Shown here piece by piece: positions 27,378-49,870 of a stretch of DNA of 64,000 nt. The stretch is from sequence record MN871449.1. One strand, given 5' to 3'. Below the pieces are notes generated by a model. The model was not told where the DNA came from and did not search any database. It saw only the letters and a program-made list of their open reading frames with translations. The translations under genes and the position numbers were made by a program. How positions within the stretch are numbered: position 1 is the stretch's first letter; every line of letters begins with the position of its first letter.

Positions 27378-27656
27378 ATGGCGATAGATAACAGCGATTT
27401 GAATAACTTGTTGAATCAAGTTCTGATTAAAGTCATATGGACAAATAAAAGAAAAATCGTTAAAGCCCGTAAATTGATGACCCCTGTGTTATTATTCCTC
27501 GATACAGCGGAAAGACGGTTCAACTATACGATTAAACAACTTCATTTAATCTATCGTATCAAAAATAATTATTGGGGCCCGATGAAAAAACATATTCTCC
27601 GAAAAACTTACGCGTACAGGAAGGTAGCACCTGATGACTTTGAACCCAAACAATGA
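27378..27656 (+). CDS. Hypothetical basic protein
   Basis: Coupled ORF in operon. Confidence 0.6.
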   Translation: MAIDNSDLNNLLNQVLIKVIWTNKRKIVKARKLMTPVLLFLDTAERRFNYTIKQLHLIYRIKNNYWGPMKKHILRKTYAYRKVAPDDFEPKQ

Positions 27657-28128
27657 CGGTATTGACCACATCAACATTTACTCTAAGTCCAAGAACCGTC
27701 TCGGGTTCTTTCTCTCTCACTTTCCAAAGACACCTTTCATTCACCCTGAGTACGGAAACTTTGAAAGTATGGAAGGGTTTTGGTATTACGCAAAAACCGG
27801 TTTTAAACACCAATACCTCAGAGGCTTGTACGGTAACGAGGCGAAAGCATTTGGGAAGAAACTGGAAGTGGTTCATCATCCCGATTTCCTCTCGATTATC
27901 AAAGCTGCTAATCTGGCGAAATTGAATACTTACAAACACCAATACCAAGCGCTGGTCAATTCAACCCTACCTTTTACCCATTACTACGTTTTCGGTAATT
28001 GGCGAATGGAGAAAGGGGCGCGTGTCTGGGAAGACGACGTTAAAGTTGTTACGCCTAAAAGCGGAGAATGGTTAGTGGAGTTTTGGGAAGAAACTCGACG
28101 GCTTTTAAAATCTATATCACCTGAGTGA
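27634..28128 (+). CDS. NADAR-like (T4 gp30.3-type) protein
   Basis: LSHF..TPF......FESMEGF...K.....L.GLYG.EAK.FGK parallels the T4 30.3/YbiA NADAR pattern LSNF..PF...F.S.E.F...K...G..AK..G (recalled, not searched). Confidence 0.6.
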   Translation: MTLNPNNDGIDHINIYSKSKNRLGFFLSHFPKTPFIHPEYGNFESMEGFWYYAKTGFKHQYLRGLYGNEAKAFGKKLEVVHHPDFLSIIKAANLAKLNTYKHQYQALVNSTLPFTHYYVFGNWRMEKGARVWEDDVKVVTPKSGEWLVEFWEETRRLLKSISPE

Positions 28129-28134
28129 AGGTAA
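28111..28134 (+). promoter_or_regulatory. Early promoter-like motif TCTATATCACCTGAGTGAAGGTAA (before sspB)
   Basis: 22/23 identical to 57963-57985. Confidence 0.7.
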
Positions 28135-28158
28135 TTAAATAACAATCGGGAGTAACAC

Positions 28159-28587
28159 ATGTCTTCTTTAAATAAAGCGTTGTTTGATGCAGGTTATAGC
28201 TGGCTTATCGATAATGGCAGTCGTATTTACATCACGGTCTTTGGTACCGAAATCACCGTGAATCCCATTCTTCGTCAATATGTCAAACCGGTACCTAACA
28301 TGCAGGGTTATCACGTATTGACACTGAATGTTTCTCCGCATTCCTGTCAGCTTTCTTCACTGGACGAAGGGTTGTTCTTCGAAGGGCGTTTCGGGGGTAA
28401 ACTCGCCTCAGACACTTTCCCGTGGGGGTCCGTCATTCAGATGTTTAACCCTGATAACCCGGAACAGATGATTCAACTCCCGCAAAAACTCATCACTGCT
28501 GACGGGCGTTCTGACGAACCCGCTGAACCGGTAAAAGAAACTAAGAAACCAAACCCATTTTCGGTTATCTCCGGAGGGAAGGAATAA
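28159..28587 (+). CDS. sspB: ClpXP specificity-enhancing adaptor SspB homolog
   Basis: YSWLIDNG..IYI, LNVSP, F.GRFGG...FPW.SV core; linker ending KKPNPFSVISGGKE (XB-like tail). Confidence 0.85.
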   Translation: MSSLNKALFDAGYSWLIDNGSRIYITVFGTEITVNPILRQYVKPVPNMQGYHVLTLNVSPHSCQLSSLDEGLFFEGRFGGKLASDTFPWGSVIQMFNPDNPEQMIQLPQKLITADGRSDEPAEPVKETKKPNPFSVISGGKE

Positions 28588-28877
28588 TGTCGGCAAAGAA
28601 AGTCAAGCAGTCTCCAACTGTCGCCTATGACCGCAATCCAAATTACCCTTACATCGGCGACATCGTAAGTGAAACTGATTTACATCTACTCGCGCGCGAT
28701 GAAGATCTGTTCTCCGCCAGCATCGGGTTGATTGAGAAACATCCCGATGAATTCACTGCGGTGGTCGGAACACCGACAGGAACCATTATCGCCAATGCGT
28801 GTGGGTCAATCGAACTTCCGATCCGCACCCTCAAACTGGGACAGAAACTTTCCTTGAGGAAGAATCTTAATGACTAA
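28587..28877 (+). CDS. Hypothetical protein
   Basis: Coupled to sspB. Confidence 0.65.
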   Translation: MSAKKVKQSPTVAYDRNPNYPYIGDIVSETDLHLLARDEDLFSASIGLIEKHPDEFTAVVGTPTGTIIANACGSIELPIRTLKLGQKLSLRKNLND

Positions 28878-29496
28878 AATGATTCATGAAGGTGACTACA
28901 GTCGAGTAGATATCCGCGATTACGACATTCGCGATGATAAGGTTATTCAGTTAAAGAGCGGGCAGTACGAGTTTGATATCGACTCTGCTCGCAAATTGGC
29001 CATGGATATCCTCGCGTCGTGTCAATTAGCCGAATCTCATTTCCGTAAAGAGGAAGGCTACGCTGATGACGAAGTACTCACTGAAGAACAAAGAGCAACC
29101 CTCCCGGCTATTTGCGTACACGAGCCGTCACCAGGTATCTTTGTTCAGGTCCGTATCGTTTCAGCGGCAAATATCTGGGGAACAGTGAAACCGAATGAAA
29201 GACTCGGAGAAGCACTGGGGTTAAAAGAAGAAGAGCCTTTGGTCATTCCTTCTTCGCGCCACGGTTCGCTTCTACAGCATATCCTCGGCGATGAGATCAA
29301 ACGCCTCCGAGCAAAGGCAGGTGAAGAACCTGTCAATTTCCCGCACGGTAGCGGACAAGGGTTTATCGATCAATGGGATCGTTATTGGAATCGAGAAGAC
29401 GCGTTTGTCATTGCGAAACACGCCGGACAAATTAACGCCACACGTCCCAACGTTATCATTATTAACAACGAACTTTATTCCGAAAACTTATATTGA
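28870..29496 (+). CDS. Hypothetical protein with conserved phage C-terminal domain (QGFIDQ..RY..R.EA..IA...LYSE.LY)
   Basis: Motif recognised from phage hypotheticals; followed by a terminator. Confidence 0.7.
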   Translation: MTKMIHEGDYSRVDIRDYDIRDDKVIQLKSGQYEFDIDSARKLAMDILASCQLAESHFRKEEGYADDEVLTEEQRATLPAICVHEPSPGIFVQVRIVSAANIWGTVKPNERLGEALGLKEEEPLVIPSSRHGSLLQHILGDEIKRLRAKAGEEPVNFPHGSGQGFIDQWDRYWNREDAFVIAKHAGQINATRPNVIIINNELYSENLY

Positions 29497-29499
29497 CCG

Positions 29500-29529
29500 A
29501 CTGAGAGAGGGATAATGCCCTCTCTCAGT
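29500..29529 (+). terminator. Intrinsic terminator
   Basis: ACTGAGAGAGGG-ATAATG-CCCTCTCTCAGT. Confidence 0.8.
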
Positions 29530-29558
29530 TATTATTTCTTAAATACCGGAGGTGTACT

Positions 29559-29684
29559 ATGCCAGTAGAATGGAAAATCGTTATCTTCGTAATCTTCTGT
29601 TACGGTGGTGCTTGGTACATCTCCGGTGCGATACTTAAGGTACTGTTTGCTATTGGTAAGAAGCTCTATGATTCACTAGAATAA
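29559..29684 (+). CDS. 41-aa membrane peptide (not in ORF track)
   Basis: SD GGAGGT; MPVEWKIVIFVIFCYGGAWYISGAILKVLFAIGKKLYDSLE*. Confidence 0.65.
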   Translation: MPVEWKIVIFVIFCYGGAWYISGAILKVLFAIGKKLYDSLE

Positions 29685-29693
29685 GGAGACGCT

Positions 29694-29954
29694 ATGGCCT
29701 TGAAAAAATGTTTGAAAATACAGAGAGGGAAACTGAAAAGAAGTTCCGTTACCGCTAACCATATTTTCCTCATTAAAGTATCCAAACCCTATTTTGATGA
29801 TTTAGACAGTAATCTCACAATTTCAGCGCCACGCCGGATGGGGAAAACGTTACTTGCGACCAGGCTGAAAAAATGTGCTGAGATGGGCCATCTATTGAAA
29901 AACCGCGTTCATTATCGGCACGGGTTAAAAATGTTCTCAACCGAGGGGCTCTAA
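29694..29954 (+). CDS. Small protein with Walker-A-like APRRMGKT
   Basis: SD AAGGAG; no Walker B seen. Confidence 0.55.
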   Translation: MALKKCLKIQRGKLKRSSVTANHIFLIKVSKPYFDDLDSNLTISAPRRMGKTLLATRLKKCAEMGHLLKNRVHYRHGLKMFSTEGL

Positions 29955-30448: not shown

Positions 30449-30465
30449 CGATAAAGAGGTGAATC

Positions 30466-30780
30466 ATGTTAACACACGTGATTGAACTGAAATATGTGGA
30501 ACTCCCTATTGTTCCGACTGAGTACAACGGGTTCTTACGTATCCTGGCAGGCGACCCCGCCGCTGATATCCTGAATGAACCACCAGTCACGCCACGGCTT
30601 CCTGAACAAGACGCGTTAGATTACGCGACCTTGAATTTCGTGTACGACGGAAATCACACCGCAGTTCTTTATCCCGGTGATTTGATTCTGATTCACGACA
30701 ACAGTCGGTTCAGTGTTGTACTCAACCCGGATGCGGATTACCTGCGAACCCTCCTTTTAACGGTAGGTGTGAAGTCATGA
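30466..30780 (+). CDS. Hypothetical protein
   Basis: SD GAGGTG. Confidence 0.7.
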   Translation: MLTHVIELKYVELPIVPTEYNGFLRILAGDPAADILNEPPVTPRLPEQDALDYATLNFVYDGNHTAVLYPGDLILIHDNSRFSVVLNPDADYLRTLLLTVGVKS

Positions 30781-31019: not shown

Positions 31020-31032
31020 GAGAAGAAAATTA

Positions 31033-31425: not shown

Positions 31426-31438
31426 AGGAAACTAAAAC

Positions 31439-31771: not shown

Positions 31772-32983
31772 ATGTTTGACTTAGGCGTAGTAATCGGTAA
31801 ATTCGCGCCCCTTACGTTGGGGCACATCAACTTAATCACAGAGGCTGCTGTGCAGTCTAAGCATGTCCTCGTCATTCTTTCCCACGACCAACGTTGGCTG
31901 GATAAACAATCGCCACGAGACCAAAAGGTACTCAACTTCAAAAATCGTCTGCGCTGGCTGCAACAAACTTACGCGGATACAGAACACGTCACGATCGATT
32001 TCATTGACGAGGCTTCTGTACCGGAATACCCTAACGGTTGGAAAGAATATGCTGCTCTGCTCGGCGCTAAGATTTTCAACGAGGCGGGTAGATTGGCAGC
32101 TAACCACAGTCAGGCGCAGAGCATTGCTATTTTCAGTAGCGAGCTGGATTACGATGAAAAATACAAAACGCACCTTGGTTTTGTAGAACACGTTATCGTT
32201 GACAGCAATCGTACCCGCGTCCCCATCTCTGCGACCATGATCCGTGAAAACCTTTACGACCATTGGGAATATCTCCCGAGTATTGTTCGTAAAGATTATT
32301 GTTTGCGGGTGGTCGTATTAGGTGTTGAGAGTTCTGGGAAAAGTTCCCTCGTCAAGAACCTCGCCAAACTCTACAATACCAGCTGGGTTGAAGAGTACGG
32401 TCGTACGTACTGTGAAACGGTCTTAGCTGGTTCGGAAGCGACTCTCCGTAGTTCTGACTACCCGTTGATTGCGTATCGTCACAAAGAGCTGGAGGAGGAA
32501 GCATTACGTACTTCTAATCGACTCTGTTTCATCGATACGAACGCCTTCATTACGGAATATTACCATCGGCTGTACGAGGGTAAACCTAACCCTATTGTTT
32601 CTGCTATCGCGGCTGAAGAGCATTACGATCTCGTGTTGATTCTTTCGCCGGAAGTACCATGGGTCGATGATGGTCTGCGGCTGAATCCTGACCGCGAGAA
32701 AACAGAGAGTCTCTTCCAACAAATGCTTTGGGAATTTAAAAACCAAACACCATGGGGGCGCACTGTATTCATTAAAGGGGACTCTTACAAAGGTCGTTTA
32801 GATCAATCACGTGAAGCGGTTGATAACTTGTTATCCGGTAACGGCACTGCCGGCCAGAGCGCTCCAGAAATTCCAAATAAGTTCCCTCCTGCTGCCAGCG
32901 GTGGTAACTTTGATAAAGATTGGAGTATGGTAGAAAGCATCGAGGCTGGTTCTCATCAGAACCCCGCTGATTGGGGTGGATGA
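31772..32983 (+). CDS. nadR: NadR-type NMN adenylyltransferase / ribosylnicotinamide kinase (no HTH)
   Basis: GKFAPLTLGH (HxGH-like), ISATMIR, Walker A GVESSGKS, EYGR, DT-containing kinase motif, WVDDGLR. Confidence 0.93.
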   Translation: MFDLGVVIGKFAPLTLGHINLITEAAVQSKHVLVILSHDQRWLDKQSPRDQKVLNFKNRLRWLQQTYADTEHVTIDFIDEASVPEYPNGWKEYAALLGAKIFNEAGRLAANHSQAQSIAIFSSELDYDEKYKTHLGFVEHVIVDSNRTRVPISATMIRENLYDHWEYLPSIVRKDYCLRVVVLGVESSGKSSLVKNLAKLYNTSWVEEYGRTYCETVLAGSEATLRSSDYPLIAYRHKELEEEALRTSNRLCFIDTNAFITEYYHRLYEGKPNPIVSAIAAEEHYDLVLILSPEVPWVDDGLRLNPDREKTESLFQQMLWEFKNQTPWGRTVFIKGDSYKGRLDQSREAVDNLLSGNGTAGQSAPEIPNKFPPAASGGNFDKDWSMVESIEAGSHQNPADWGG

Positions 32984-32987
32984 TTTC

Positions 32988-33131
32988 ATGACTCAACAAC
33001 GGCGTACGCAACGCAAAATAAAGCGGATGTTAGGCGATAACTATCGCTTTTACCACGCTGTATTTGGCGACAAACTTAATCTGAGATCCGCAAGTTACAT
33101 CTCAACTTTTCTCGAAGGATTTAATAGATGA
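32988..33131 (+). CDS. 47-aa basic protein between nadR and pnuC (not in ORF track)
   Basis: MTQQRRTQRKIKRMLGDNYRFYHAVFGDKLNLRSASYISTFLEGFNR*; ATGA overlap with the pnuC start. Confidence 0.55.
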   Translation: MTQQRRTQRKIKRMLGDNYRFYHAVFGDKLNLRSASYISTFLEGFNR

Positions 33132-33817
33132 ACTCATTGGTAATGAAAACTTTCACTGACTTTGCGCACTGGAAGAAAGTCGAATACTTTTGGCTGATCG
33201 TAGCGTTAATCGTCGTCGGATTAGGGAGCTGGCAAGCCAGTCCGTTAGAATTCACGGCAGCGCTGACTAACGTCGTCTGCGTGATTCTGGTGGCGAAGGG
33301 TCGCGTCTCTAATTATTACTGGGGGACGATTGGCGTAATTACCTACGGTATTGTTTCGTACAATACCGGCCTTTATGCCAATGCGGCGTTGAACGCTATT
33401 TACCTTCCCATGCAGTTTATCGGTATTTATTACTGGACGAAAGACCTGGGCAAAACTCCAGCCAAAGCTGACGTAGCGGTTAAAACGATCACTTTACGTG
33501 ACGTGATAACTTATCTGGTTGTTGGGGTTATCTTCTGGTATGGCCTGACCGAATACCTGAAAACTACGCAGGATCCGTTTCCTGCATTAGACGCGTTCTG
33601 CTTAGTCGCATCGCTCATCGCCATGTGGATGATGATCAAGCAGCAGCCAGAGCAATGGATTCTCTGGATCATTATCAACTGCGTCACGATTTATCTGTGG
33701 GTGATCCCGGCGCTTAATCAACCGGGTTCATGGGCGCAGGTGGCACAGTGGGCAGTATTCTTGATGAATGCTTTCTACGGCCTTTGGAAGTGGTATATCA
33801 CCAAAACCAACAAATAA
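33128..33817 (+). CDS. pnuC: Nicotinamide riboside transporter PnuC
   Basis: LEFTAALTNVVCVILVAKG..NY.WG, GLYA..L, G.YYW, P.LDA...SLIA.W.M.....E.W.LW. Confidence 0.92.
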   Translation: MNSLVMKTFTDFAHWKKVEYFWLIVALIVVGLGSWQASPLEFTAALTNVVCVILVAKGRVSNYYWGTIGVITYGIVSYNTGLYANAALNAIYLPMQFIGIYYWTKDLGKTPAKADVAVKTITLRDVITYLVVGVIFWYGLTEYLKTTQDPFPALDAFCLVASLIAMWMMIKQQPEQWILWIIINCVTIYLWVIPALNQPGSWAQVAQWAVFLMNAFYGLWKWYITKTNK

Positions 33818-40218: not shown

Positions 40219-40934
40219 TGGATTTCATCGAACGTTTTCTGAATCATAAACCAGAGTTCACTTTCTTCATCCAACGTCTTAAACGGGACGAATTTTATCT
40301 CCGTAAATTTTGGTCTGATGAAGATTGGGCTCCTCCGGGTACCTTTAAGCCCTACGGCTGGGTGGCAGGGATCGCTACCAGTGAATTCGTTTCTTACCTC
40401 GTTAATCACGGCGTAGACCCCCGTTTCTTCTGTCTGCTGAATAAATGGTTTCCGATGATCATGGTCCGGTCAGATGAAGCCGATACCGCGGTACTGATTG
40501 ATAAACTCACCGACAAACTCTCGGCAGTACCTGAAGCGTTGATTGCGACGTATTGCGATCGGGTAGAAGAGTATTGTCAGGATGCCGTTAAACTGTATCG
40601 CGGCCCGACGGATTCCTCTAACGGCGAAATGAATATTCTCCCGTTTAAAGGGACAGTTGAGTCCTTCTTAAACAACCCATTAATCAACCCAGACAAACTA
40701 AAGGCAGTCGGAGAGAAAGCAGGGTGTCGGGTCTATTACAATATCGCCATTAATCGGCTCTCTGCGGAAGTGAACGCTGACCATACATTCTTTATCGTCT
40801 TCGCTCCTGGCGAGAACGAATATTACATCAACATGCACCCCAGCTGGCCGCTTACTCTCCCAGACAATGAGGCGGTGAGCAAAACGTTGGTGGCAGTAAA
40901 CAACGCGTATAACGAGGTTAAAAATGCACAGTGA
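40218..40934 (+). CDS. Hypothetical protein
   Basis: Coupled ORF. Confidence 0.7.
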   Translation: MDFIERFLNHKPEFTFFIQRLKRDEFYLRKFWSDEDWAPPGTFKPYGWVAGIATSEFVSYLVNHGVDPRFFCLLNKWFPMIMVRSDEADTAVLIDKLTDKLSAVPEALIATYCDRVEEYCQDAVKLYRGPTDSSNGEMNILPFKGTVESFLNNPLINPDKLKAVGEKAGCRVYYNIAINRLSAEVNADHTFFIVFAPGENEYYINMHPSWPLTLPDNEAVSKTLVAVNNAYNEVKNAQ

Positions 40935-41652
40935 GTTCTCAGTCTTCTGGGATAATTACGGACTGAAGGAAATGAACCCGATCTGGGGACGTTGTTTCTT
41001 CAATGACTACAATGGGATCATTCGCTGGGTAGAAGAACACAACGCAGGGCGACCGTACCACTCCACACGCCATTTAATTGGCGTAGGTGTACTGACAGGT
41101 TATCTTCTTTCCAATCTTGAGCCATCAAATTACGGGCTCTCTGAGAAGGATTTTGAATCAGCCGTCATCGCAGGACTAGTTCACGATTTCTGTCACTTAG
41201 GAGAGAAAGATGACTGGAAGAATATTGAGTACACTTTACAGCAACTTGAGCAATTAGGTTTCTGGCGTGAGTTTCCTACGGCTAACAAAGCGATGATCAC
41301 TTTATTAGTCGGATTCACGCATTATAACTTCGACGACCCTTTTCCGCAGTATCCCGGCGGTACCGGTATGCGTTATTTATTCGGCATTATCCGGGACGCC
41401 GATCAACTCTACGCGATGTCTTATCTCGATGAAGACATCTTCAACGGACTTTACCAAGAGATCGGTATTCGCTTCGGTCAGTCACGAGAAGAGTTTACGA
41501 AAAGAAACATTGACTACATCAGCAATCTCAAGTTTTACACTGCGTTAGGCGCGGCACACGCGAAAAAATACCGAGTTGTTGCGCAAGGTAGTTGTCATTA
41601 TTTTGGCCTAACTGCACAGGGGAATAACAATGAAACTGTTTCTGGCGAGTGA
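40924..41652 (+). CDS. HD-domain phosphohydrolase
   Basis: YHSTRH...AGLVHDFCH...IIRDAD metal-binding H..HD..D pattern. Confidence 0.85.
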   Translation: MHSEFSVFWDNYGLKEMNPIWGRCFFNDYNGIIRWVEEHNAGRPYHSTRHLIGVGVLTGYLLSNLEPSNYGLSEKDFESAVIAGLVHDFCHLGEKDDWKNIEYTLQQLEQLGFWREFPTANKAMITLLVGFTHYNFDDPFPQYPGGTGMRYLFGIIRDADQLYAMSYLDEDIFNGLYQEIGIRFGQSREEFTKRNIDYISNLKFYTALGAAHAKKYRVVAQGSCHYFGLTAQGNNNETVSGE

Positions 41653-42157
41653 GAAGTTTTACGATCTCCCTGAATCTAAAGAAGCGACAGTGTTATTAAT
41701 CGCCGCTGAAAATAAAGAAGCTGCGTTCCGCAATGCAACGTTCAGTGTTTGCCCGGACGAACCCCGCTCTGTTCTGACACCCATGTTCGATATTTGGGAA
41801 TTAGGGGATTTTATCCCCCTACCCGCTATTTGGGATGGACTCCAGCGCTACCCGGAGAATTCAACGGGTGGTGTGACGATTCTTTCTGGGTATGAGCCAG
41901 TGGAATATACTGAAATCGAAGCGCAATACCGTAAATGGCTTTATGCGAAATATAAAGCAGAAGCGACCGACCACAAAATGTTTGCCTATTACGATAACCT
42001 TAAAAAGAGCAGAGATAACTTCTTCTCTTTCACCGAGAAGAAAGGCTGGTTATACCGTGAAGAAGAACATCTTGGGTTCAAAGTACCCGTTTGGGTAGAT
42101 CCTATTTGGGATCAATTGATCGAAGTTTACGGCGCAGGTTATACGCTCCAAGGGTAA
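41630..42157 (+). CDS. Hypothetical protein
   Basis: Coupled ORF. Confidence 0.65.
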   Translation: MKLFLASEKFYDLPESKEATVLLIAAENKEAAFRNATFSVCPDEPRSVLTPMFDIWELGDFIPLPAIWDGLQRYPENSTGGVTILSGYEPVEYTEIEAQYRKWLYAKYKAEATDHKMFAYYDNLKKSRDNFFSFTEKKGWLYREEEHLGFKVPVWVDPIWDQLIEVYGAGYTLQG

Positions 42158-42161: not shown

Positions 42162-42725
42162 TTGAACGATCCAATTAAGTTATCAAAAACACTGTGTTTC
42201 ATTTTACGCCATCGGCCTCAGGCTTTGAAATTAACGCCTGATGAACTTGGCTATGTCAGACTCGACGACCTGATTGCAGCATTCTCTGAACAGAATAAGG
42301 TAGTTACGTTACAGGAAATCATGCACGTTGTAGAGACGGACGATAAGAAACGATTTGGGTTATCCGATGATTTTTCTTCCATCCGTGCTGTACAAGGACA
42401 TTCATTCCCAGTAAATGAAATGGCCTTCAATGAAGAGGTACCGCCTGAGGTACTTTACCACGGCACTGCATCGGGGAATTTAGAGAGCATTTTTCAGGAA
42501 GGGTTAACGCCGGGGTCACGTCAGTTCGTTCATTTAACTGACCACATTGAGACAGCGCGTTTAGTGGGGTTACGGTACGCTAAGAAAGGGTCGCTCGTAG
42601 TCTTGAGTATTGACACCCAGAAACTTTTGGAACGCGGCTACGTGTTCTACAAAGCGATTAACGGCGTGTGGTTAGTGAAACACGTCCCGGTAGGTTGTTT
42701 CAAAATAGAGGAAAAGAAAGAATGA
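42162..42725 (+). CDS. kptA: NAD-dependent RNA 2'-phosphotransferase Tpt1/KptA
   Basis: LSK.L..ILRH, DDKKRF, IRAVQGHS, LYHGT, I..EGL.P..RQFVHL. Confidence 0.95.
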   Translation: MNDPIKLSKTLCFILRHRPQALKLTPDELGYVRLDDLIAAFSEQNKVVTLQEIMHVVETDDKKRFGLSDDFSSIRAVQGHSFPVNEMAFNEEVPPEVLYHGTASGNLESIFQEGLTPGSRQFVHLTDHIETARLVGLRYAKKGSLVVLSIDTQKLLERGYVFYKAINGVWLVKHVPVGCFKIEEKKE

Positions 42726-43267
42726 AATTTAAGTTTGAACGGGGCGCTTACGCGGCTGACGTCTATGGTTTAGTGGAAGGAGAGAAGGTCGCTCTCGGTA
42801 AAAATGCCGCAGGGGAAACTGTTCTCATACCGGCCCTTGCAGAAATGATTCATGAAGCCATAGCAGGGAAAGAATTGGAGATCCTTGATCACGGCTCTAT
42901 GTACCAACCGGGGTATCTCAAATGGGAGCAATATCAAAATCCTTATCGTTTTCGAGGGGAGGCGATAGTAGCCGCAGACGGAATTGTCTGGCAGTGGCCG
43001 CTGCGTGGTCACGACAGGGAAACGTATAAAGATTATCTCGAACGGTTAGCGGATAAACCGCGCAAACTGGTCAGTCATTTCAGATGCCAAAAAGCAATTA
43101 CCTTCGAAATTCCGCTTGGCGCCGTGGCTTATACCCTCAAGCGATTATTATCTACCGGGTTAGTTGTCAATTTACTCGATATGAAAGATATCGAAGGGAT
43201 CGACGATCTCCCCTCGGGAATCCATGCTATTTCATTTTACGACGTTTATTGGGTTTTTACAAAATGA
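42722..43267 (+). CDS. Hypothetical protein (start corrected to MKFKF)
   Basis: ATGA overlap with kptA. Confidence 0.65.
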   Translation: MKFKFERGAYAADVYGLVEGEKVALGKNAAGETVLIPALAEMIHEAIAGKELEILDHGSMYQPGYLKWEQYQNPYRFRGEAIVAADGIVWQWPLRGHDRETYKDYLERLADKPRKLVSHFRCQKAITFEIPLGAVAYTLKRLLSTGLVVNLLDMKDIEGIDDLPSGIHAISFYDVYWVFTK

Positions 43268-43626
43268 AACGAATCCAGTCCATTAAAGTGTTAGGAACCT
43301 TCAACGAATCCGCGATGTTGCATTATTCCGCTTTCATTGCGAATAACCTGATGAAGGGTAAGACCGTAAAGGTATACGGTGACCCGCGAACTCGCGCGAA
43401 ATTCAAAGAGGTCATTGCTGACTACCTCGGACCGAAATTGATCGCTTCGATCAAGGTCACTCCGTTACCGAACACCTTAGCAATGGCGCAGCGGATAAAT
43501 CGTGGTCAAGTAGACTGCGCGTGTTTATTCATCAGTTCGGAAGGTAAATTCTTCCCTACGTTAAAAGAGTCGCTTACGCCAGTCCGTTCGATGTCGGCGT
43601 TGTTTGTAGACGCGGTCATTTGTTAA
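43264..43626 (+). CDS. Hypothetical protein (start corrected to MKRIQ)
   Basis: ATGA overlap; terminator follows. Confidence 0.65.
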   Translation: MKRIQSIKVLGTFNESAMLHYSAFIANNLMKGKTVKVYGDPRTRAKFKEVIADYLGPKLIASIKVTPLPNTLAMAQRINRGQVDCACLFISSEGKFFPTLKESLTPVRSMSALFVDAVIC

Positions 43627-44606: not shown

Positions 44607-45203
44607 ATGTTTAATCTGAAGATAGTTGATTTATCTGGCTTTGATAGCTGGCCAAATTTTGAAAAGCGGGATTTCAGAACGATGGTCCCGGGTAAGGATT
44701 ACGACTGCATTATTACACCCGGCAATTCGTTTGGTATTATGGACGGTGGTTTTGACAAAGTAGTAAGGGACAAGTTTCCTCGCTCCCAAGAAACTGTCCA
44801 AACGGCCATCAAACAATTCTGGGGTAAAGAAATGCCAGTGGGGCAGGCTATCACCGTTTCACTGAGTGAAGTAGTTCAATTGTGCTATGCACCGACGATG
44901 CGATTCCCTGGCCCGACAAAAAGTAAAGACACTGCATATCACGCGGCGCTGGCTGCTTTTTGCCAGATAAAATATTTCAACCGTATTTCTCCAGGCCGGG
45001 CGATAAAAAACGTCGTTATGCCGTTATTCTGTACAGCGACAGGTGGGATGCCTGTAGAGGTTTCTTACGAGCAAATTATGTATGCCTACCAGAGAGCTAC
45101 ATCTGGTGATAACTCTCCCGAGAAAAATTGGGGTGATTTATTGGTTCATCGAGATAATTTGAAACGATTGTCTTCTTGGACAAATAAGCGTACAGGTAGA
45201 TAA
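44607..45203 (+). CDS. Macrodomain (ADP-ribose processing) protein
   Basis: DCIITPGNSFGIMDGGFDKVV, APTM, PLFCTATG. Confidence 0.9.
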   Translation: MFNLKIVDLSGFDSWPNFEKRDFRTMVPGKDYDCIITPGNSFGIMDGGFDKVVRDKFPRSQETVQTAIKQFWGKEMPVGQAITVSLSEVVQLCYAPTMRFPGPTKSKDTAYHAALAAFCQIKYFNRISPGRAIKNVVMPLFCTATGGMPVEVSYEQIMYAYQRATSGDNSPEKNWGDLLVHRDNLKRLSSWTNKRTGR

Positions 45204-45234: not shown

Positions 45235-45281
45235 TTATTCCGTCTTGATTTTATTTGATTAAATTAATAAGAGAGAACAAA

Positions 45282-45674
45282 ATGGCCTTTGAAAAGTTTG
45301 TTCCGAAGACCAATAAACTTCCTAACCTAAAACCGGTCTATCTCCGTATTGCACCAGGCGGGAGTTGTTACCTCTCCGCAGGGTTCAGGGACTTACAGCC
45401 TGAACCTTATTCGTCGCTCGAATTCGAATACGACCCTATCACGTTAGAGTTTCGTTTTCGGGTAGGGAAAGATTACCTGTATAAAGTGCTCTCTGGTGCG
45501 TTTTCGCTTCCGGCCGAATTAACCCGGCTGATTACTTCCCGGAGCGGAACGAGGTATAACCGGATGTTCTATTACCGTATCATTGAGCAATCGGAAGGTT
45601 GGTTTACCGGGGAATTCGTAAGTGTGAATAAAGCCCCTAAACACTATAAAATCGCTAAAGAGGAAAAAGAATAG
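45282..45674 (+). CDS. Hypothetical protein, dispersed paralog family
   Basis: MAFEKF start; paralog of 43679 and 62745. Confidence 0.7.
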   Translation: MAFEKFVPKTNKLPNLKPVYLRIAPGGSCYLSAGFRDLQPEPYSSLEFEYDPITLEFRFRVGKDYLYKVLSGAFSLPAELTRLITSRSGTRYNRMFYYRIIEQSEGWFTGEFVSVNKAPKHYKIAKEEKE

Positions 45675-47053
45675 TGAAACAGTATCTCGATCTACTACGT
45701 GAAATTATCGAAACCGGTCGTCAGCGAGGAGACAGGACGGGAACGGGGACGATTTCTATTTTTGATGCGAAACTGAAGTACGACCTTTCGACCGGGGAAT
45801 TCCCTCTGCTCACCACGAAGTTCGTTCCGCGTAAATCTGCGTGGTTTGAGTACAAGGCAATGTTAAACGGGGAACTCCACCTCGATACCATGGTGGAGAA
45901 TAATGTCAAGTTCTGGGACCCGTGGCGTTTAGAAGCTGACGTGGTGAAAGAAGTTCCTCTGGAAAACTACGAGCGCCTGAAGTGGCTTGAAGAGAACAAC
46001 AAAGAAGCTCACATCGAGTTTTACAGCAAAGGGATCTCCATTCAGCCTGTTGAAGACGGCCATCGTTGGCTAGATGAAAAAGGTGTACCGCGTACTCGCC
46101 AGGTCACCGTGAACAAAGCGGGTGACCTTAATGCCCCTTACGGGTCAGCATGGCGAAACTTCTCCGAGAATCCATTAGAGAAGAAGGGCGTTGACCAAAT
46201 CGCGTATGCGCTCGATCTCCTACGGAACAATCCGGAATCGCGTCGTATCCTGATCTCGGCGTGGAACCCGCTTTGGATGCCGGAAGAAACGAAAGAAGTT
46301 ACTCTCAGTAGTGACGAGATGTGGGAACATTTAAAAACTCACAGTCCGGACCTTTATGCTATTTTCTGGCCGCGCCTGGAATATCATGGCAAGACCGATA
46401 ACTGCGAAGAGTTCTTAGCAAGTCATGGTGTACCACGCACTAAGACCGTTAAGGTTACGCCGCAGGAAAATATTGTGGAGGGTAAACCATGCCTTACCCC
46501 GTGTCATTTCCTGGTAGAGTTCTACGTAGAAGAGATGACATTGAGCGAGCGGTTAAAATGGTGCAGGAACAATGCTAACCCGTACTTCCAGGATCTTTGG
46601 GAAGACCATATGTCGGACTGCTACAGCGAAGAACATTGTGACCAGCCGAAAATGTCCCCTGAGCGTAAAGCGGAATGGTTGACGGAGAACCACGTACCGA
46701 CGCAGTGGCTGAGTTTGAAATACAGTATGCGGAGCTGTGACACAATGACCGGTGAGCCCTTTAACCAGGCTTTCTACGCCTTCATGTTGCTGTCATTTGC
46801 TCATGAGCTCGGTATGGCGCCCAATAAGCTGGTTGGTAATCTGACTAACGTCCATATCTACAATAATCAGTTAGAGGAAGCTAAGTTACAGTTAACTCGC
46901 GAGCCTTACAAACCGGTTGAGTGTTACGTTCGCTCTGAGCACTACTATAACTCAGAGATGCCGAAGAAAGGGTTGTTTGAACTCACCTATGAAGATTTCG
47001 TCTTCACTGAGTACAAGCATCACCCAGCCATTAAATTACAGGTGTCGGTATGA
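45674..47053 (+). CDS. thyA: Thymidylate synthase with three large insertions
   Basis: DRTGTGT, FPLLTTK, YG..WR, DQI, SRR..SAWNP, PCH, RSCD..G.PFN, HIY. Confidence 0.96.
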   Translation: MKQYLDLLREIIETGRQRGDRTGTGTISIFDAKLKYDLSTGEFPLLTTKFVPRKSAWFEYKAMLNGELHLDTMVENNVKFWDPWRLEADVVKEVPLENYERLKWLEENNKEAHIEFYSKGISIQPVEDGHRWLDEKGVPRTRQVTVNKAGDLNAPYGSAWRNFSENPLEKKGVDQIAYALDLLRNNPESRRILISAWNPLWMPEETKEVTLSSDEMWEHLKTHSPDLYAIFWPRLEYHGKTDNCEEFLASHGVPRTKTVKVTPQENIVEGKPCLTPCHFLVEFYVEEMTLSERLKWCRNNANPYFQDLWEDHMSDCYSEEHCDQPKMSPERKAEWLTENHVPTQWLSLKYSMRSCDTMTGEPFNQAFYAFMLLSFAHELGMAPNKLVGNLTNVHIYNNQLEEAKLQLTREPYKPVECYVRSEHYYNSEMPKKGLFELTYEDFVFTEYKHHPAIKLQVSV

Positions 47054-47364
47054 CAACGTGCGTTTTAGAAACGTGTCTGGTAGTTGGTCACGCTCGTCAC
47101 TCCGGTGTTACTTCGACGGAGTTTAATGATTCCGTAGAATTGTTACAGGGACTACCTAAACATCGTTCGGAATCGCTTTCTCCGTCATTTGCTTTTACGA
47201 ATGAAGAAACAGCGATTATTGAGAAGCTCTTCGTTATTTTCGAAAGGGAGATTTATTTCTACGCGTACGGCGGAGAAATAGGAATCTGGCGGAGTCTCTC
47301 ATTTGATGAAACTGGCGGTGACGATTTATCGATTAAACTCGAACTCCGTATCAGGCAAAAATAA
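47050..47364 (+). CDS. Hypothetical protein
   Basis: Coupled to thyA; terminator follows. Confidence 0.6.
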   Translation: MTTCVLETCLVVGHARHSGVTSTEFNDSVELLQGLPKHRSESLSPSFAFTNEETAIIEKLFVIFEREIYFYAYGGEIGIWRSLSFDETGGDDLSIKLELRIRQK

Positions 47365-47370
47365 GGTAAA

Positions 47371-47397
47371 AAGGTGAGGGGTCTTTCCTCTCACCTT
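47371..47397 (+). terminator. Terminator after thyA operon
   Basis: AAGGTGAGGGG-TCTTT-CCTCTCACCTT. Confidence 0.7.
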
Positions 47398-47418
47398 GTG
47401 TTTAATAAGGGGATACTA

Positions 47419-47742
47419 ATGAAAATTTATTTAGCAGTTATTTACACTCGAATGGACTTACTGGACAGAAAAGTCGCGGCGGTTACAGTAACACCAGAAG
47501 ATCGGGAAGTTACAACTATTAACTATAGGCTATCTATCGGTGTCGCCAATCTGATGTCTCAACTTAAAGAGTGGATGAATGAGACCGACAACGACACTCT
47601 CTTCAGTCTTCTCAAACGTCTACAAGGAGTCACTGCCTCAGAAGAAGGGCTCCCTGTAAACGATAATTGCTGGCACAGTCTCTCTTTGATACATCCTTTC
47701 GAATACGGTCTTACTCTTTACTACAAGGTAGAGGAAAAATAG
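47419..47742 (+). CDS. Hypothetical protein (start corrected to MKIYL)
   Basis: SD AAGGGG. Confidence 0.65.
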   Translation: MKIYLAVIYTRMDLLDRKVAAVTVTPEDREVTTINYRLSIGVANLMSQLKEWMNETDNDTLFSLLKRLQGVTASEEGLPVNDNCWHSLSLIHPFEYGLTLYYKVEEK

Positions 47743-47743
47743 A

Positions 47744-48148
47744 ATGGGCGCTTACATTTACGGGCGGTTTGAAAAGAAAAATAAAAATGGGAAGTGGGAA
47801 AGAATCTCTGGCGGTGTAGATTGGTTTGATTTCCAATCTTATTTCATTTACGGTTGGTTTGCTGATGTCCGGAACCACGCCGGAGTCCCTCCGTTACCTT
47901 ACAAGTGGGAAAAGGCAGGGGAGCCAATTAATTACGACTGCGACTATAATTACACGCTGGAAACAAAATATCTGTTCGAGTTTGATTACGATCAGTTAGT
48001 GGAGGATCGCCGAGACGGTCACGATACTCTACCTGAGGGACAAGGGACAACAGCGACTTGGCGAGAACATCTTGGAGAAGAGTGGTTTGAGAAATTAAAT
48101 ATTCTTAAATCAAAAGGCGTTGAGCGTTTAGTGTTTAATTTCAATTAG
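47744..48148 (+). CDS. Conserved phage hypothetical (QSY..FGWFADVRN motif)
   Basis: Recognisable small phage family. Confidence 0.7.
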   Translation: MGAYIYGRFEKKNKNGKWERISGGVDWFDFQSYFIYGWFADVRNHAGVPPLPYKWEKAGEPINYDCDYNYTLETKYLFEFDYDQLVEDRRDGHDTLPEGQGTTATWREHLGEEWFEKLNILKSKGVERLVFNFN

Positions 48149-48158
48149 GGGATAGGTT

Positions 48159-48764
48159 ATGTCAAGAACAAAACTCGGTTTTCTTAAAGAGCCGTTAAAT
48201 CAGGAAGAAAGGGACTTAATCACTAATGATTATTACCCGGTTTTTATTCGTTCAAATCAAACATTTTTATTCAAGTCATTAACAGATAAAATCGAAAATT
48301 TCAACCGAGAGCACTATGGTGACGAGATTATTTCCGAGGAGGTATTAACATTCGCTTTACAAAATGGGCCTTTAGCCAATTGGAAAAAGGAAGTCATCGA
48401 ACGATGTGGCGATCACCCTGTTATTAATACATTTTCGATTTCCGTCCAATTTAGCTATAGGGATGACTACCCAGGTCGCAGTATTGATGTTTTGTTTTCA
48501 GAGAGCCTCAAGTTACTCGCAAAGGGAGAATTACAAAACTTCAACACGCCGGAAAGATTTTCTCCAGAGTATTATATTCGTCATTGGAATAATGACTACG
48601 CCGAATCAAAAGAATTTCTCTCCAGCCCAGCTGGTAAAATCAACGCCTTAATCTCTAAATATGTCGATGATCAAATAAGACGTTCAGAGATCGGTAGCGA
48701 TAAATTAGAGGATCATTCCGAATTCGTTACTGAAATAGCCAAACTACTACAGGAGTCAAATTAA
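48159..48764 (+). CDS. Hypothetical protein
   Basis: In operon. Confidence 0.7.
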   Translation: MSRTKLGFLKEPLNQEERDLITNDYYPVFIRSNQTFLFKSLTDKIENFNREHYGDEIISEEVLTFALQNGPLANWKKEVIERCGDHPVINTFSISVQFSYRDDYPGRSIDVLFSESLKLLAKGELQNFNTPERFSPEYYIRHWNNDYAESKEFLSSPAGKINALISKYVDDQIRRSEIGSDKLEDHSEFVTEIAKLLQESN

Positions 48765-49378
48765 TGCATACGTCTTCAAGTCCCATTTTTATTATCACTA
48801 ACAAGTTCGGTACCGCCGTGCACCTGACTTTAGTCCAAGCGGTACAGCTCGCACAGTTCATTGGTTTCAGACGCGGGCAGCCTCTGGAGCCAGGTGCCTA
48901 TCGTTACGACTCTGAGACGGCGCAAACTTATCGCAACCGCACTGTCGCCGAGAATGGACTGTACGGTTATTATTCTCGTTTTATCATCGACTGGCATCGT
49001 AATCTGGACGGTCATGACGTCAAGATTATTTTCCGTTTTGGCGATGAAGAAGAACGACTGACAGTGAGCGAACTGGGTAAAATTTATACCGCTCTGATTC
49101 GTTTTATCGCTGCGCACGTTAAAGGGTTGAAATTCCCAGGCTGGCGAAATCTCTCTTTTCATTCTCATGTAAAGTTGAAATTCTCAGGGTTTGGCTTTTC
49201 CCAAGAACACCCAGGTAAACTCGTCGAATACAACAAAGGGAAAATAGTTAACAAGTCATTAGTTTCCCATAATGCCCACATGGACAACGTTAATCTTCCT
49301 CGTCCTGACTACGTTAAGAAACTTTGTTTTGGCGGGCGAGAATACCGTCTCGAAGATTGTAAGTTTATCATCAATTAA
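48764..49378 (+). CDS. Hypothetical protein
   Basis: Coupled ORF. Confidence 0.7.
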   Translation: MHTSSSPIFIITNKFGTAVHLTLVQAVQLAQFIGFRRGQPLEPGAYRYDSETAQTYRNRTVAENGLYGYYSRFIIDWHRNLDGHDVKIIFRFGDEEERLTVSELGKIYTALIRFIAAHVKGLKFPGWRNLSFHSHVKLKFSGFGFSQEHPGKLVEYNKGKIVNKSLVSHNAHMDNVNLPRPDYVKKLCFGGREYRLEDCKFIIN

Positions 49379-49396
49379 ATACGGAGAGTTTGGGCA

Positions 49397-49870
49397 ATGA
49401 CCTATACCGAAATTAAAGGGGATTTGATTGAGGCTTTCTTTAATAAGGAAGTCGACGTCATTGCCCACCAAGTAAATTGTTTTGGGATTGCAAAGAGCGG
49501 TATCGCCGTTAAGATCTTCGAAGCTTTTCCCTGGATAGCTGAGCCTTACTTTGCTGACAAACGCCCTGTCAAAAACAGATTGGGGAAATTAACGGCCGCC
49601 AAAAAGGATGAGCAGTGGGGTTTCAATCTTTGTGGCCAATTTCACCACGACCATTCAGATCCGGGATATAAAACGCATTATAGCGCACAGTATCTGGCAA
49701 TGAAGATAATGTCCTCAATTCTCAAAAAGGAAGAGAAACCATTAAGAGTTGGTTTTCCTTTAATCGGTTGCGGGTTGGCCGGTGGTGATTGGGAAATGGT
49801 CCGCCAAAATATTGAGCGGGCTTTTAAGGATACCAATCTTGAAATCATTGTTTATCGGTTCGAGGGTTAA
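49397..49870 (+). CDS. Macrodomain (Poa1p / T4 tk.4-like) protein
   Basis: IKGDL..DVIAHQVNC.G..KSGIA..I...FP; PLIGCGLAGGDW. Confidence 0.92.
   Translation: MTYTEIKGDLIEAFFNKEVDVIAHQVNCFGIAKSGIAVKIFEAFPWIAEPYFADKRPVKNRLGKLTAAKKDEQWGFNLCGQFHHDHSDPGYKTHYSAQYLAMKIMSSILKKEEKPLRVGFPLIGCGLAGGDWEMVRQNIERAFKDTNLEIIVYRFEG

Follow-up and report, generated by a model that had tools for sequence, protein, structure and literature searches.

Phages are known to act on NAD+ and ADP-ribose in several ways. In NARP3, an NAD+ reconstitution pathway made up of the NadR-like Bas30_86 and the PnuC-like Bas30_87, the prototype restored NAD+ that had been depleted by Sir2-HerA and rescued phage growth (Yan et al., Sci Adv 2026, PMC13464706). 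Two orphan proteins counter DarT toxins: AdfN (T4 gp30.3), a NADAR that is an anti-DarT1 factor (PMC11257639; PMC11125620, which also describe the catalytic residues of NADARs and their His-type clade), and AdfM (PhiKZ gp104), an anti-DarT2, DarG2-like macrodomain of chimalliviruses (PMC13309987). SCO6735-type macrodomains cleave thymidine-ADP-ribose, SCO6735 itself preferring DNA (PMC9411070), and a clean-up of RNA ends by KptA and Macro proteins, with or without HD, has been predicted in group 1 jumbo phages (PMC7824862, PMC9503650). Published surveys, along with the studies of NARP1-3, AdfN and AdfM, have already dealt with the NAD+/ADP-ribose theme in phages, and the genes described here are new members of kinds already known.

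The window, a stretch of 64,000 nucleotides from record MN871449.1, shows 100% identity to KpXa_1, a Klebsiella jumbo phage of the Siatvirus group with a 304 kb genome. Nucleus formation, as in the chimalliviruses, is assigned to this group from the annotation of a relative. The six genes named in the original prediction are all present with the starts predicted, on the + strand, as are the other ORFs of the window described below. NadR, PnuC and Tpt1 lie above curated thresholds (Pfam; NCBIfam), and the ORFs at 27634, 44607 and 49397 fall below Pfam cut-offs, their identities being confirmed by deeper tests (profiles, hhalign and AF2 models). The gene identities and the replenishment of NAD+ survive from that prediction; the integration of the genes into one kit does not. 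The region would be part of a long accessory arm of a nucleus-forming phage, and it is reasonably probable that this arm picked up, one by one, at least four independent modules of familiar kinds that deal with NAD+/ADP-ribose: NadR with PnuC (module A), the NADAR (B), Tpt1 with a Macro_2-type macrodomain (C) and a SCO6735-type macrodomain (D). These modules have NAD+/ADP-ribose as a common currency and are not co-inherited as a unit; an early expression programme is probably common to them.

The NADAR-superfamily protein and the SCO6735-type macrodomain

The ORF at 27634..28128 encodes a NADAR-superfamily protein of 164 aa, from a divergent phage clade that has T4 gp30.3/AdfN as a relative. 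It has no Pfam match, neither PF08010 nor PF08719 picking up the sequence. The profile of its family, which numbers 2194 cluster representatives, matches the NADAR structures 8BAU (2.7e-4), 2B3W (0.019) and 8BAT (0.89) in the PDB. T4 AdfN aligns with the family by hhalign (93.9%, E=1.5e-7), placing E47 and K54 opposite the catalytic E36 and K43 of AdfN; the K54 column holds Lys or Arg in only 15 of the 27 aligned family members. The fold originally proposed is borne out by the AlphaFold (AF2) model (pLDDT 97.0), whose matches in the PDB are confined to NADAR folds: the top three Foldseek matches are YbiA, PnNADAR and GlNADAR (DarG1-NADAR), and the rest have TM<=0.17. Many proteins annotated NADAR are among the BFVD matches, and the orthologue in Serratia phage Moabite carries the annotation N-glycosidase. 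As judged from profiles and model, the protein is a NADAR.

Like AdfN, this is a small stand-alone protein from a large lytic phage with a NADAR fold and counterparts of the essential E36 and K43, and a near-invariant His in its family falls no more than one column away from the His of gp30.3. As the C-terminal half of the family aligns poorly with known NADARs, H116 is a putative catalytic residue of the last strand, placed to within one alignment column. The protein differs from AdfN in being ~23% identical over 90 columns with its C-terminal half unaligned, in an extra beta-hairpin region (residues 123-139) of its model, and in that its family is often fused in relatives to DUF4326 and SLOG domains (YAcAr, YpsA, DprA-like), and also to Macro domains. 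The fold and the two catalytic residues suggest that it is most likely an N-glycosidase, which would strip ADP-ribose from DNA guanine (DarT1-type damage) or a related adduct.

The ORF at 49397..49870 encodes a macrodomain of the ALC1/TARG1 class, SCO6735/BT1257 subtype. Its Macro score of 20.2 bits is under the Pfam cut-off of 22, and its profile matches 2FG1 (BT1257; 7.7e-25), 5E3B (SCO6735; 1.8e-23), TARG1 (4.6e-18) and DarG (~2e-14) in the PDB. As in SCO6735, the catalytic Gln is kept (the invariant Q81 of the family aligns with Gln85) and the TARG1 Lys/Asp dyad is missing (PMC9411070); unlike SCO6735, the protein comes from a phage, with an identity of roughly 30% by eye, and its homologues are extremely widespread in phages. 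It belongs to the same macrodomain class as AdfM (hhalign 97.3% for the 49397 family), and its host phage is also a nucleus-forming jumbo phage, but it lacks the Lys-containing motif common to AdfM and a third macrodomain, kpMJ359_103, which is encoded outside the window and shows 36% identity to AdfM. The 49397 protein scores 44 bits on the DarG model of NCBIfam, where AdfM reaches 138 and kpMJ359_103 127, and it carries a Gln at the position of the catalytic Lys of DarG. On these grounds, and with the AdfM-like gene lying outside the window, it was rejected as a DarG2/AdfM orthologue. The subtype and the catalytic Gln suggest a protein that could in principle strip ADP-ribose linked to thymidine or to Glu/Asp. 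The DarG2-like gene of this phage group is the third macrodomain.

It has been argued for phage Macro, NADAR and SLOG domains (Iyer et al. 2022) that the main targets of such proteins are small immune signals or toxins derived from ADP-ribose (cyclic ADP-ribose isomers, ADP-ribose 1''-phosphate, ADPr>P), which they would degrade, rather than ADP-ribosylated DNA in need of repair. The fusions of the 27634 family to SLOG, DUF4326 and Macro domains are in keeping with this, as is the stand-alone DprA-like/SLOG protein annotated in the phage group. However, all NADARs assayed so far, including gp30.3, hydrolyse guanine-ADP-ribose on DNA (PMC11257639, PMC11125620), SCO6735 prefers DNA (PMC9411070), and small-molecule activity is not on record for these NADAR and macrodomain clades, making such a role for the NADAR and macrodomains of the window unlikely.

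Arrangement and distribution of the six genes

The original prediction saw in the six genes a single counter-defence kit, refilling NAD+ and erasing ADP-ribose from guanine, thymine and proteins. In its favour, all six identities hold. The genes all point the same way and are closely packed (~96% coding, largest gap 320 bp), and their order is kept in two genera, Siatvirus and Maaswegvirus, such that their co-regulation as a programme is possible. Six of the ten NAD/ADPr genes in the genome fall inside 22.3 kb, a clustering beyond that expected (P ~0.002) from a uniform null that takes no account of how phage genomes are built from modules. Furthermore, AdfN and AdfM show that an anti-DarT role is possible for NADARs and macrodomains of phages, and thymidine-ADP-ribose is cleaved by macrodomains of the SCO6735 type (PMC9411070).

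Against this, the six genes are interspersed among ~40 unrelated ORFs, and the phage distributions of their families differ widely, homologue counts being 2801 phage records for the 49397 family (T4 Tk.4 among them), just 98 for Tpt1, and 738, 516 and 45 for other families. In Moabite the backbone and the NADAR are retained, and the other five genes are absent from the syntenic 36 kb, which implies that the set is a mosaic and not a unit. In addition, the DarG2/AdfM orthologue is a separate gene outside the window, and the Macro_2-type macrodomain keeps company with Tpt1, in a setting of RNA repair. We consequently regard a single kit as quite improbable. Outside the window the phage also has a candidate NARP1 pair, Prs-like and NAMPT-like.

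NadR and PnuC

The gene at 31772..32983 encodes a NadR-like bifunctional NMN adenylyltransferase/ribosylnicotinamide kinase, matching Pfam CTP_transf_like and AAA_28 (1.7e-30 for the latter). It covers positions 65-408 of the 411 in the NCBIfam NadR model, and this start at position 65 indicates that the N-terminal HTH is absent. The structure of Bas30_86 with NAD+ (PDB 9X6F) matches it at E=2.8e-142 across aa 2-354. A PnuC-type nicotinamide riboside transporter follows at 33128..33817 (Pfam NMN_transporter 3.1e-43; phrog_1880), with 121.9 bits on NCBIfam TIGR01528 (cut-off 42.45). A 51-aa ORF from the ORF list (32976..33131) bridges the two genes, overlapping both at its ends; gp136 of FBKp24 is an ORF of like size in the equivalent place, and different ORFs, two extra and inserted, lie between NadR and PnuC in MJ359.

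The resemblance to NARP3 lies in an HTH-less NadR with NMNAT and RNK domains and a near full-length match to the solved Bas30_86, and in a PnuC-type transporter directly downstream. The NadR is ~62% identical to homologues in Salmonella and Escherichia phages of ~110-125 kb, and has ~49 C-terminal residues additional to those of Bas30_86. The prototype phage, a T5-like coliphage, contrasts with the carrier here, a 304-kb nucleus-forming Klebsiella jumbo phage in which the 51-aa ORF bridges both genes and whose genome also contains the candidate NARP1 pair. By analogy with Bas30_86/87, PnuC would take up nicotinamide riboside, and NadR would phosphorylate and then adenylate it to NAD+, refilling a pool drained by host NADase defences (SIR2-HerA, Thoeris, DSR). 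The claim that the phage replenishes NAD+ is supported because NadR and PnuC together correspond to the validated NARP3 pathway.

A role in metabolic housekeeping, with NadR and PnuC (plus the Prs-like/NAMPT-like pair) feeding the phage's own NAD+ consumers, such as Tpt1, while the macrodomains and the NADAR clear ADP-ribose by-products, seems distinctly improbable. Tpt1 (PF01885) does consume NAD+, surveys point to an NAD+ requirement of phage replication and RNA repair and to NAD+ synthesis genes in many jumbo phages, and the nearest solved relative of the Macro_2-type protein is a by-product phosphatase. However, the NARP3 prototype to which the NadR is so closely matched rescued growth after depletion of NAD+ by Sir2-HerA, and DNA adducts are the substrates of the nearest characterised proteins related to the NADAR and to the SCO6735-type macrodomain.

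Tpt1, the Macro_2-type macrodomain and their neighbours

The gene at 42162..42725 encodes a Tpt1/KptA RNA 2'-phosphotransferase (Pfam PF01885, PTS_2-RNA, 1.2e-42), matched by PDB 7KW8 at 1e-40 in an alignment that pairs the conserved motif contexts (Arg-His, Arg and Arg). Tpt1 consumes NAD+, as had been noted, but is not itself a countermeasure to NAD depletion. The macrodomain at 44607..45203 is of the Macro_2 type (yeast YMR087W/Ymx7 ADP-ribose-1''-monophosphatase type). Its Macro_2 score of 23.3 bits is under the Pfam cut-off of 27; 1NJR (yeast YMR087W) matches at 1.3e-5 with the single sequence and 8.3e-12 with the profile, and is also the best Foldseek match of the AF2 model (pLDDT 94.2), DarG coming next. 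The ADP-ribose-binding loops are invariant in the family, homologues of which bear PF14519 or PF01661. The two macrodomains are hence of different subtypes, as predicted, Macro_2 against SCO6735/BT1257. The 44607 protein is not obviously a de-ADP-ribosylase of DNA or protein; in the distant contig L016 its counterpart and that of Tpt1 lie among RNA-repair genes.

Several neighbouring ORFs have counterparts in L016. The protein at 40924..41652, a weakly called HD-like phosphohydrolase (phrog_16069 'phosphohydrolase', 2.3e-21; weak PDB matches to HD-type phosphodiesterases and SAMHD1), is 39% identical to the N-terminal part of a 398-aa L016 protein with a weak Pfam HD match, and so appears as the first half of a protein fused in this relative. 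Directly upstream of Tpt1, a 175-aa ORF (41630..42157) has an MJ359 orthologue matching the C-terminal half of the same fusion (tblastn, 41% over 164 aa); the window's ORF has no direct match to the L016 protein at E<1e-3, nor any in Pfam or NCBIfam. Small conserved ORFs lie between Tpt1 and Macro_2 (43264..43626; phrog_12807), with a 38% identical orthologue at the equivalent place in L016, and after Macro_2 (45280..45674), with no family match and a 32% identical L016 orthologue that also follows Macro_2.

The Tpt1-Macro_2 linkage is kept in FBKp24 and in L016, where the pair is flanked by RlaP (5.4e-10) and an RNA ligase (8.7e-6). Conserved Tpt1 motifs and the persistent link to Macro_2 are shared with the KptA/Tpt1-2H-Macro branch (PMC7824862, PMC9503650), and the sequence and fold of 44607 match best those of the yeast Ymx7/Poa1-type Appr-1''-pases (1NJR). 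Unlike that branch, the phage has no detectable 2H phosphoesterase, RNA ligase or RlaP, and the HD-like enzyme is linked instead; no RNA ligase or RlaP homologue was detectable in the window or the whole MJ359 genome, leaving module C without an enzyme that creates or seals Tpt1 substrates. From the linkage and the context in L016, the one distant relative from which the RNA-repair reading is drawn, we infer that module C, with its HD-like phosphohydrolase, may be an NAD+-dependent branch of RNA end-healing, in which Tpt1 would strip RNA 2'-phosphates using NAD+. The Macro_2 protein is best read as Tpt1's partner, disposing of ADP-ribose 1''-phosphate.

ADP-ribose capping of RNA ends is reversed by macrodomains. 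A ligase-independent writer-eraser pair for the capping of 5'-phosphorylated RNA or DNA ends, as might be suggested by the ADP-ribosylation of RNA ends by TRPT1/Tpt1 enzymes (PMC9458441) and by the conservation of the linkage in a phage group where RNA ligase and RlaP are undetectable, is very improbable given the position of the L016 pair beside both of these genes and the small-molecule phosphatase that is the nearest solved relative of Macro_2. The phage's annotation also lists a polynucleotide kinase, at a distance of ~70 kb across the ends of the record.

The phage and the six-gene region

The stretch from 27000 to 50000 is 100% identical to MN871449 (KpXa_1, a 304-kb record with the host Klebsiella pneumoniae), 99% identical to Klebsiella phage KpLz-2_45 (genus Siatvirus) and, in part only, approximately 80% identical to phiKp24 (FBKp24, genus Maaswegvirus). 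The record is unannotated, flagged UNVERIFIED_ORG and titled 'Serratia phage KpXa_1' with K. pneumoniae as the listed host, a mismatch shared by several sister records. Going by the annotation of MJ359, the best-annotated relative, the group consists of nucleus-forming jumbo phages (chimalliviruses): a nuclear shell protein and a PhuZ tubulin (L010:3437-5338 and L009:44273-45241, in two stretches of that genome) are annotated, as are multi-subunit RNA polymerases. Several RNA polymerase beta-like subunits are found in the same annotation. Reliance on sigma-70 promoters would not be expected of a phage that encodes such polymerases itself.

The six ORFs are all present at the starts given in the original prediction; NadR, PnuC and Tpt1 clear curated thresholds, and the other three score below the Pfam cut-offs. 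They are situated in a long co-directional accessory arm of approximately 50 tightly packed genes, which is approximately 96% coding and has no gap larger than 320 bp. Almost all of the approximately 45 neighbouring ORFs scanned against Pfam, and the ten scanned against PHROGs, are of unknown type, so no additional NAD/ADPr gene is indicated within the span of the six.

Several features of the surrounding sequence can also be recorded. Judging by the annotation of MJ359, a battery of tail fibre, tail spike, depolymerase-type and virion structural genes is found in the first 25 kb (1-25700). The ORF at 50944-52323 encodes an AAA ATPase of 459 aa that carries a BCS1_N domain and is conserved in FBKp24 and in Serratia phage Moabite (28% identity); more ATPase genes are annotated elsewhere in MJ359. 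The thymidylate synthase ORF at 45674-47053 also encodes 459 aa, of which only aa 1-82 and 346-459 align with the 284-aa Moabite ThyA; as the alignment covers both ends alone, an extra internal segment of approximately 175 aa is likely. The thyA gene of L016, a distant metagenomic relative, is interrupted by a NUMOD3/I-TevI-like homing endonuclease gene.

NADAR and macrodomain proteins predicted to remove ADP-ribose

Searches of Pfam, NCBIfam and the PDB with the single sequence of ORF 27634 returned nothing useful, and family profiles and a structure model were needed to classify it. The window protein has no Pfam hit, and hence does not reach the gathering scores of PF08719 (NADAR) or PF08010 (gp30.3), while its relatives give only weak Pfam matches (NADAR, 0.0089 and 0.078; Phage_30_3, 0.0011). 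Approaching Pfam NADAR through named relatives failed, the Pel53 homologue ('DUF1768') and the Moabite orthologue ('N-glycosidase') both being without a match to it. The latter protein, syntenic and 53% identical, was annotated as an N-glycosidase by its depositors on the basis of an HHpred match to YbiA.

The profile of the family (78 sequences) matches 8BAU (2.7e-4), YbiA (2B3W; 0.019) and the G. lovleyi DarG1-NADAR (8BAT; 0.89) in the PDB, and hhalign pairs the family with T4 gp30.3 (AdfN) at 93.9% and E=1.5e-7. E36 and K43 of AdfN, at which mutation abolished its activity (PMC11257639), are paired in this alignment with E47 and K54. E47 is essentially invariant in the family (invariant in A1-A3, at least 90% in A4), and the K54 position is occupied by Lys or Arg in 15 of the 27 members aligned. 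When the AlphaFold model (pLDDT 97.0, pTM 0.90) was compared to the PDB with Foldseek, the matches were 2B3W (TM 0.63), 8BAU (prob 1.00, rmsd 2.9 A over 111 columns) and 8BAT (TM 0.47), with every match other than these three NADAR structures at a TM of at most 0.17; in a viral structure library, same-family proteins came first, followed by many annotated NADARs. A model without the NADAR fold was to count against the original prediction, which withstands this comparison because the only meaningful PDB matches are NADAR structures.

With the YbiA fold in the model and the catalytic Glu and Lys in the alignment, ORF 27634 can be classified as a NADAR, correcting the label 'hypothetical protein' in annotated relatives. 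Its predicted activity is that of the superfamily, hydrolysis of guanine-linked ADP-ribose. The charged catalytic residue on the last strand is His in phage gp30.3-type NADARs, Glu in YbiA and Asp in DarG1 (PMC11125620). The near-invariant H116 of ORF 27634, one alignment column off the gp30.3 His and in a C-terminal half that falls outside the hhalign match, is suggestive of such a catalytic His.

The family is a large one, with 2194 cluster representatives and homologues in 516 phage records. Fusion to DUF4326, SLOG (YAcAr, YpsA, DprA-like), DUF488-N3a or Macro domains is common among its members, and Iyer et al. described the same set of fusions for viral NADARs. The MJ359 gene kpMJ359_001 (L009:68-571) encodes a stand-alone 167-aa 'DprA-like' protein with no NCBIfam match, which may be a SLOG domain like those joined to NADARs in relatives.

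The family profile of ORF 49397 matches BT1257 (2FG1; 7.7e-25) and Streptomyces coelicolor SCO6735 (5E3B; 1.8e-23) ahead of TARG1 (4.6e-18) and DarG (1.7e-14). SCO6735 is without the catalytic Lys of TARG1 and DarG, and Gln85 is essential to it instead. Its substrates are thymidine-linked ADP-ribose on DNA and also ADP-ribose linked to Glu/Asp of proteins, and it neutralises DarT (PMC9411070). This Gln85 pairs with the invariant Q81 of the 49397 family if the 5E3B chain is assumed to have 20 extra N-terminal residues, an offset supported by Val25 also being in register under it. The position of DarG K80 is likewise an invariant Gln in the family, and K84 and D125 of TARG1 are unmatched in the TARG1 alignment. 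The subclass has a longer mobile loop, the basic residues of which serve DNA binding; in length, the corresponding 49397 loop aligns gap-free to 5E3B and 2FG1, with TARG1 shorter there. On its profile matches and the invariant Gln, ORF 49397 is assigned to the ALC1/TARG1-like macrodomain class and its SCO6735/BT1257 subclass, which sharpens the 'hypothetical protein' or 'phosphatase' labels of its relatives. Homologues are found in 2801 phage records, T4 Tk.4 among them.

An alternative, that ORF 49397 is the orthologue of AdfM (PhiKZ gp104), was rejected: the catalytic Lys is absent, the score against the NCBIfam DarG model is low (44 bits, against 138 for AdfM and 127 for the MJ359 macrodomain kpMJ359_103), and it is kpMJ359_103 that AdfM matches instead (36% identity, E=9e-23, with a Lys-containing motif common to both). 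ORF 49397 and kpMJ359_103 are only 18% identical (E=0.11). This third macrodomain, of the DarG2/AdfM type, is encoded far outside the window (MJ359, L010:25293-25736). Homologues occur in 322 phage records, of which ten are at least 95% identical; as this equals the number of Siatvirus-group records, KpXa_1 probably carries this gene too.

NAD+ synthesis genes and the Tpt1-Macro_2 pair

The NadR gene (31772-32983, + strand) encodes 403 aa, with CTP_transf_like at aa 7-159 and AAA_28 at aa 179-323 in Pfam. The protein therefore carries the NMNAT and ribosylnicotinamide kinase domains but not the N-terminal HTH, as the first 64 of the 411 positions of the NCBIfam NadR model are unmatched. The closest solved structure is 9X6F (E=2.8e-142 over aa 2-354), which is Bas30_86 bound to NAD+ according to the paper describing NARP3, the NAD+ reconstitution pathway formed by NadR and PnuC (PMC13464706). 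The approximately 49 C-terminal residues run past the end of this alignment, and no domain was detected in them. PnuC (33128-33817, + strand) scores 3.1e-43 against PF04973 and 121.9 bits against TIGR01528, the cut-off of which is 42.45. It starts 145 bases past the NadR stop, with a 51-aa ORF overlapping both genes. This junction varies between phages: the window and FBKp24 have the 51-aa bridging ORF (32976-33131 in the window), and MJ359 has two inserted ORFs of 133 and 156 aa (L001:8765-9649).

Yan et al. report that a NadR/PnuC-type pair imports nicotinamide riboside, makes NAD+ and restores it after depletion by Sir2-HerA (PMC13464706), a pathway predicted earlier by Osterman et al. An HTH-less NadR with both domains and an adjoining PnuC, the gene content of NARP3, are present in the window, and from homology to Bas30_86/87 we infer that the two proteins would take up nicotinamide riboside, synthesise NAD+ and restore it following depletion by host defences. 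For these two genes the finding is not new. NadR homologues are present in 738 phage records; the closest outside the clade are in Salmonella and Escherichia phages of approximately 110-125 kb, at approximately 62% identity.

A second candidate route lies approximately 11 kb beyond the window end, at 199131-201787 of the KpXa_1 record, where a Prs-like gene (L008:11131-12009) adjoins a Nampt-like gene (L008:12006-13787) with an overlap of 4 bases. The Prs-like protein clears only the subfamily model (130.9 bits) and falls far under every equivalog cut-off, a pattern compatible with a divergent clade, though not decisive. The pair is a candidate NARP1 (Adps and Namat) when judged by adjacency, as Osterman et al. 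did. Co-occurrence of NARP1 and NARP3 in one genome is not reported in the accessible text of the NARP3 paper or the NARP1/2 preprint.

Tpt1/KptA (42162-42725, + strand) scores 146.4 bits against PF01885, well over the cut-off of 26, and its alignment to 7KW8 retains the R-H, R..GHS and R..VHL contexts. These we take to hold the residues of the Arg-His-Arg-Arg tetrad of Tpt1. ORF 44607 does not reach the gathering score of PF14519 (23.3 bits; cut-off 27), and several orthologues at 42-70% identity have a precomputed match to that model. Its family profile matches the yeast ADP-ribose-1''-monophosphatase YMR087W/Ymx7 (1NJR) at 8.3e-12, and 1NJR is also the best Foldseek match (8.2e-8) of its structure model (pLDDT 94.2). 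Across 22 family members, the loop N-x-F-G-I-M-D-G-G-x-D is invariant (the residue after N being Ser in at least 90%) and a Gly is kept in the second macrodomain ligand loop; the first ligand loop aligns with the corresponding loop of 1NJR. Profile and model together identify ORF 44607 as a Macro_2 macrodomain, closest to the 1NJR type, in place of the labels 'hypothetical protein' or 'tail protein' in annotated relatives. The latter was rejected as an artefact of PHROG labelling, both profile and fold being those of a macrodomain.

Both families are rare in phages (98 records for Tpt1, 45 for Macro_2 of this type), and the two genes lie 1.9 kb apart in the window and in FBKp24. They are neighbours again in the 264-kb L016 (54% and 42% identity, respectively), with two nearby small ORFs kept. 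A 398-aa L016 protein with a weak HD match spans the HD-like ORF at 40924-41652 and the ORF directly upstream of Tpt1, the latter matched via its MJ359 orthologue only. Two ORFs in the window (40924-42157) against this single protein indicate that a gene was split or fused, and that the two parts would have a common function beside Tpt1. The Tpt1 neighbourhood of Erwinia phage Simmy50 is uninformative.

A role for these genes in RNA repair has been proposed by Iyer et al., in which KptA of some group 1 jumbo phages strips 2'-phosphates from RNA ends, the resulting ADP-ribose cyclic phosphate is processed by Macro domains, and in some cases HD-like enzymes act as phosphatases (PMC7824862, PMC9503650). 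The L016 pair has RlaP, a nucleotidyltransferase (5.4e-10), on one side and an RNA ligase (8.7e-6, slightly short of the Pfam cut-off) on the other. However, neither has a tblastn match (E<1e-3) in the window, the KpXa_1 stretch L008 beyond its end or the whole MJ359 genome, a search that could miss a very divergent ligase, and neither is annotated in MJ359. A phage RNA-repair system, in the sense of a phage-encoded RNA ligase with RlaP, is thus not detected by tblastn or annotation, and this absence is a serious caveat to the RNA-repair reading of Tpt1-Macro_2. The ORFs flanking Tpt1 contain no 2H (paired H-x-T/S) motifs and no tRNA genes were found in the window; a polynucleotide kinase and approximately 11 tRNAs are annotated elsewhere in MJ359.

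Proposed layered counter-defence and its assembly

In concept, nothing here is new. Iyer et al. (2021, 2022) surveyed the theme; the key activities have been shown for NARP1-3, AdfN, AdfM and SCO6735, and jumbo phages with genes for NAD+ synthesis, with Macro/NADAR/SLOG erasers and with RNA repair based on KptA have been published (PMC7824862, PMC9503650, PMC11662467). The additions are a Pfam-invisible NADAR clade, the sorting of the macrodomains of one chimallivirus into three subtypes and a Tpt1-Macro_2-HD sub-module that is conserved and has no ligase. One therapeutic-class Klebsiella jumbo phage would layer several published counter-defence strategies: it would rebuild NAD+, erase ADP-ribose with NADAR and macrodomain proteins and clean up RNA ends in an NAD+-dependent manner. 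With three macrodomain subtypes in a single genome, it is a natural setting in which to study why one phage should need them all.

A more ambitious reading seems improbable as a whole: that a nucleus-forming jumbo phage stacks two NAD+ routes (NARP3 and NARP1-like) with four types of ADP-ribose hydrolase (NADAR, DarG2/AdfM-type, SCO6735-type and Macro_2), and that its ligase-less, conserved Tpt1-Macro_2-HD module is a stand-alone system, either for both writing and erasing ADP-ribose at the ends of nucleic acids or for detoxifying ADP-ribose phosphate toxins made by the host, rather than one for classical tRNA repair.

The original prediction held that the six genes form one integrated kit, restoring NAD+ and erasing ADP-ribosylation to counter NAD-based immunity. 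Under a uniform null, which is blind to the sharing of one accessory arm, the NAD/ADPr genes are clustered, with six of ten within 22.3 kb (P ~0.002) and eight of ten within 50 kb (P ~0.0009). An integrated kit is nevertheless not borne out by the distribution of the genes between phages. The syntenic region of Moabite shares the backbone (dUTPase, NADAR, an SspB-like protein, a weak ThyA match and the AAA ATPase) and keeps NADAR without the other five, NadR, PnuC, Tpt1 and both macrodomains being absent there along with the HD-like protein. This gene content and the wide differences between the six families in their distribution across phages point to piecemeal acquisition, and among the six genes only NadR-PnuC and Tpt1-Macro_2 behave as units.
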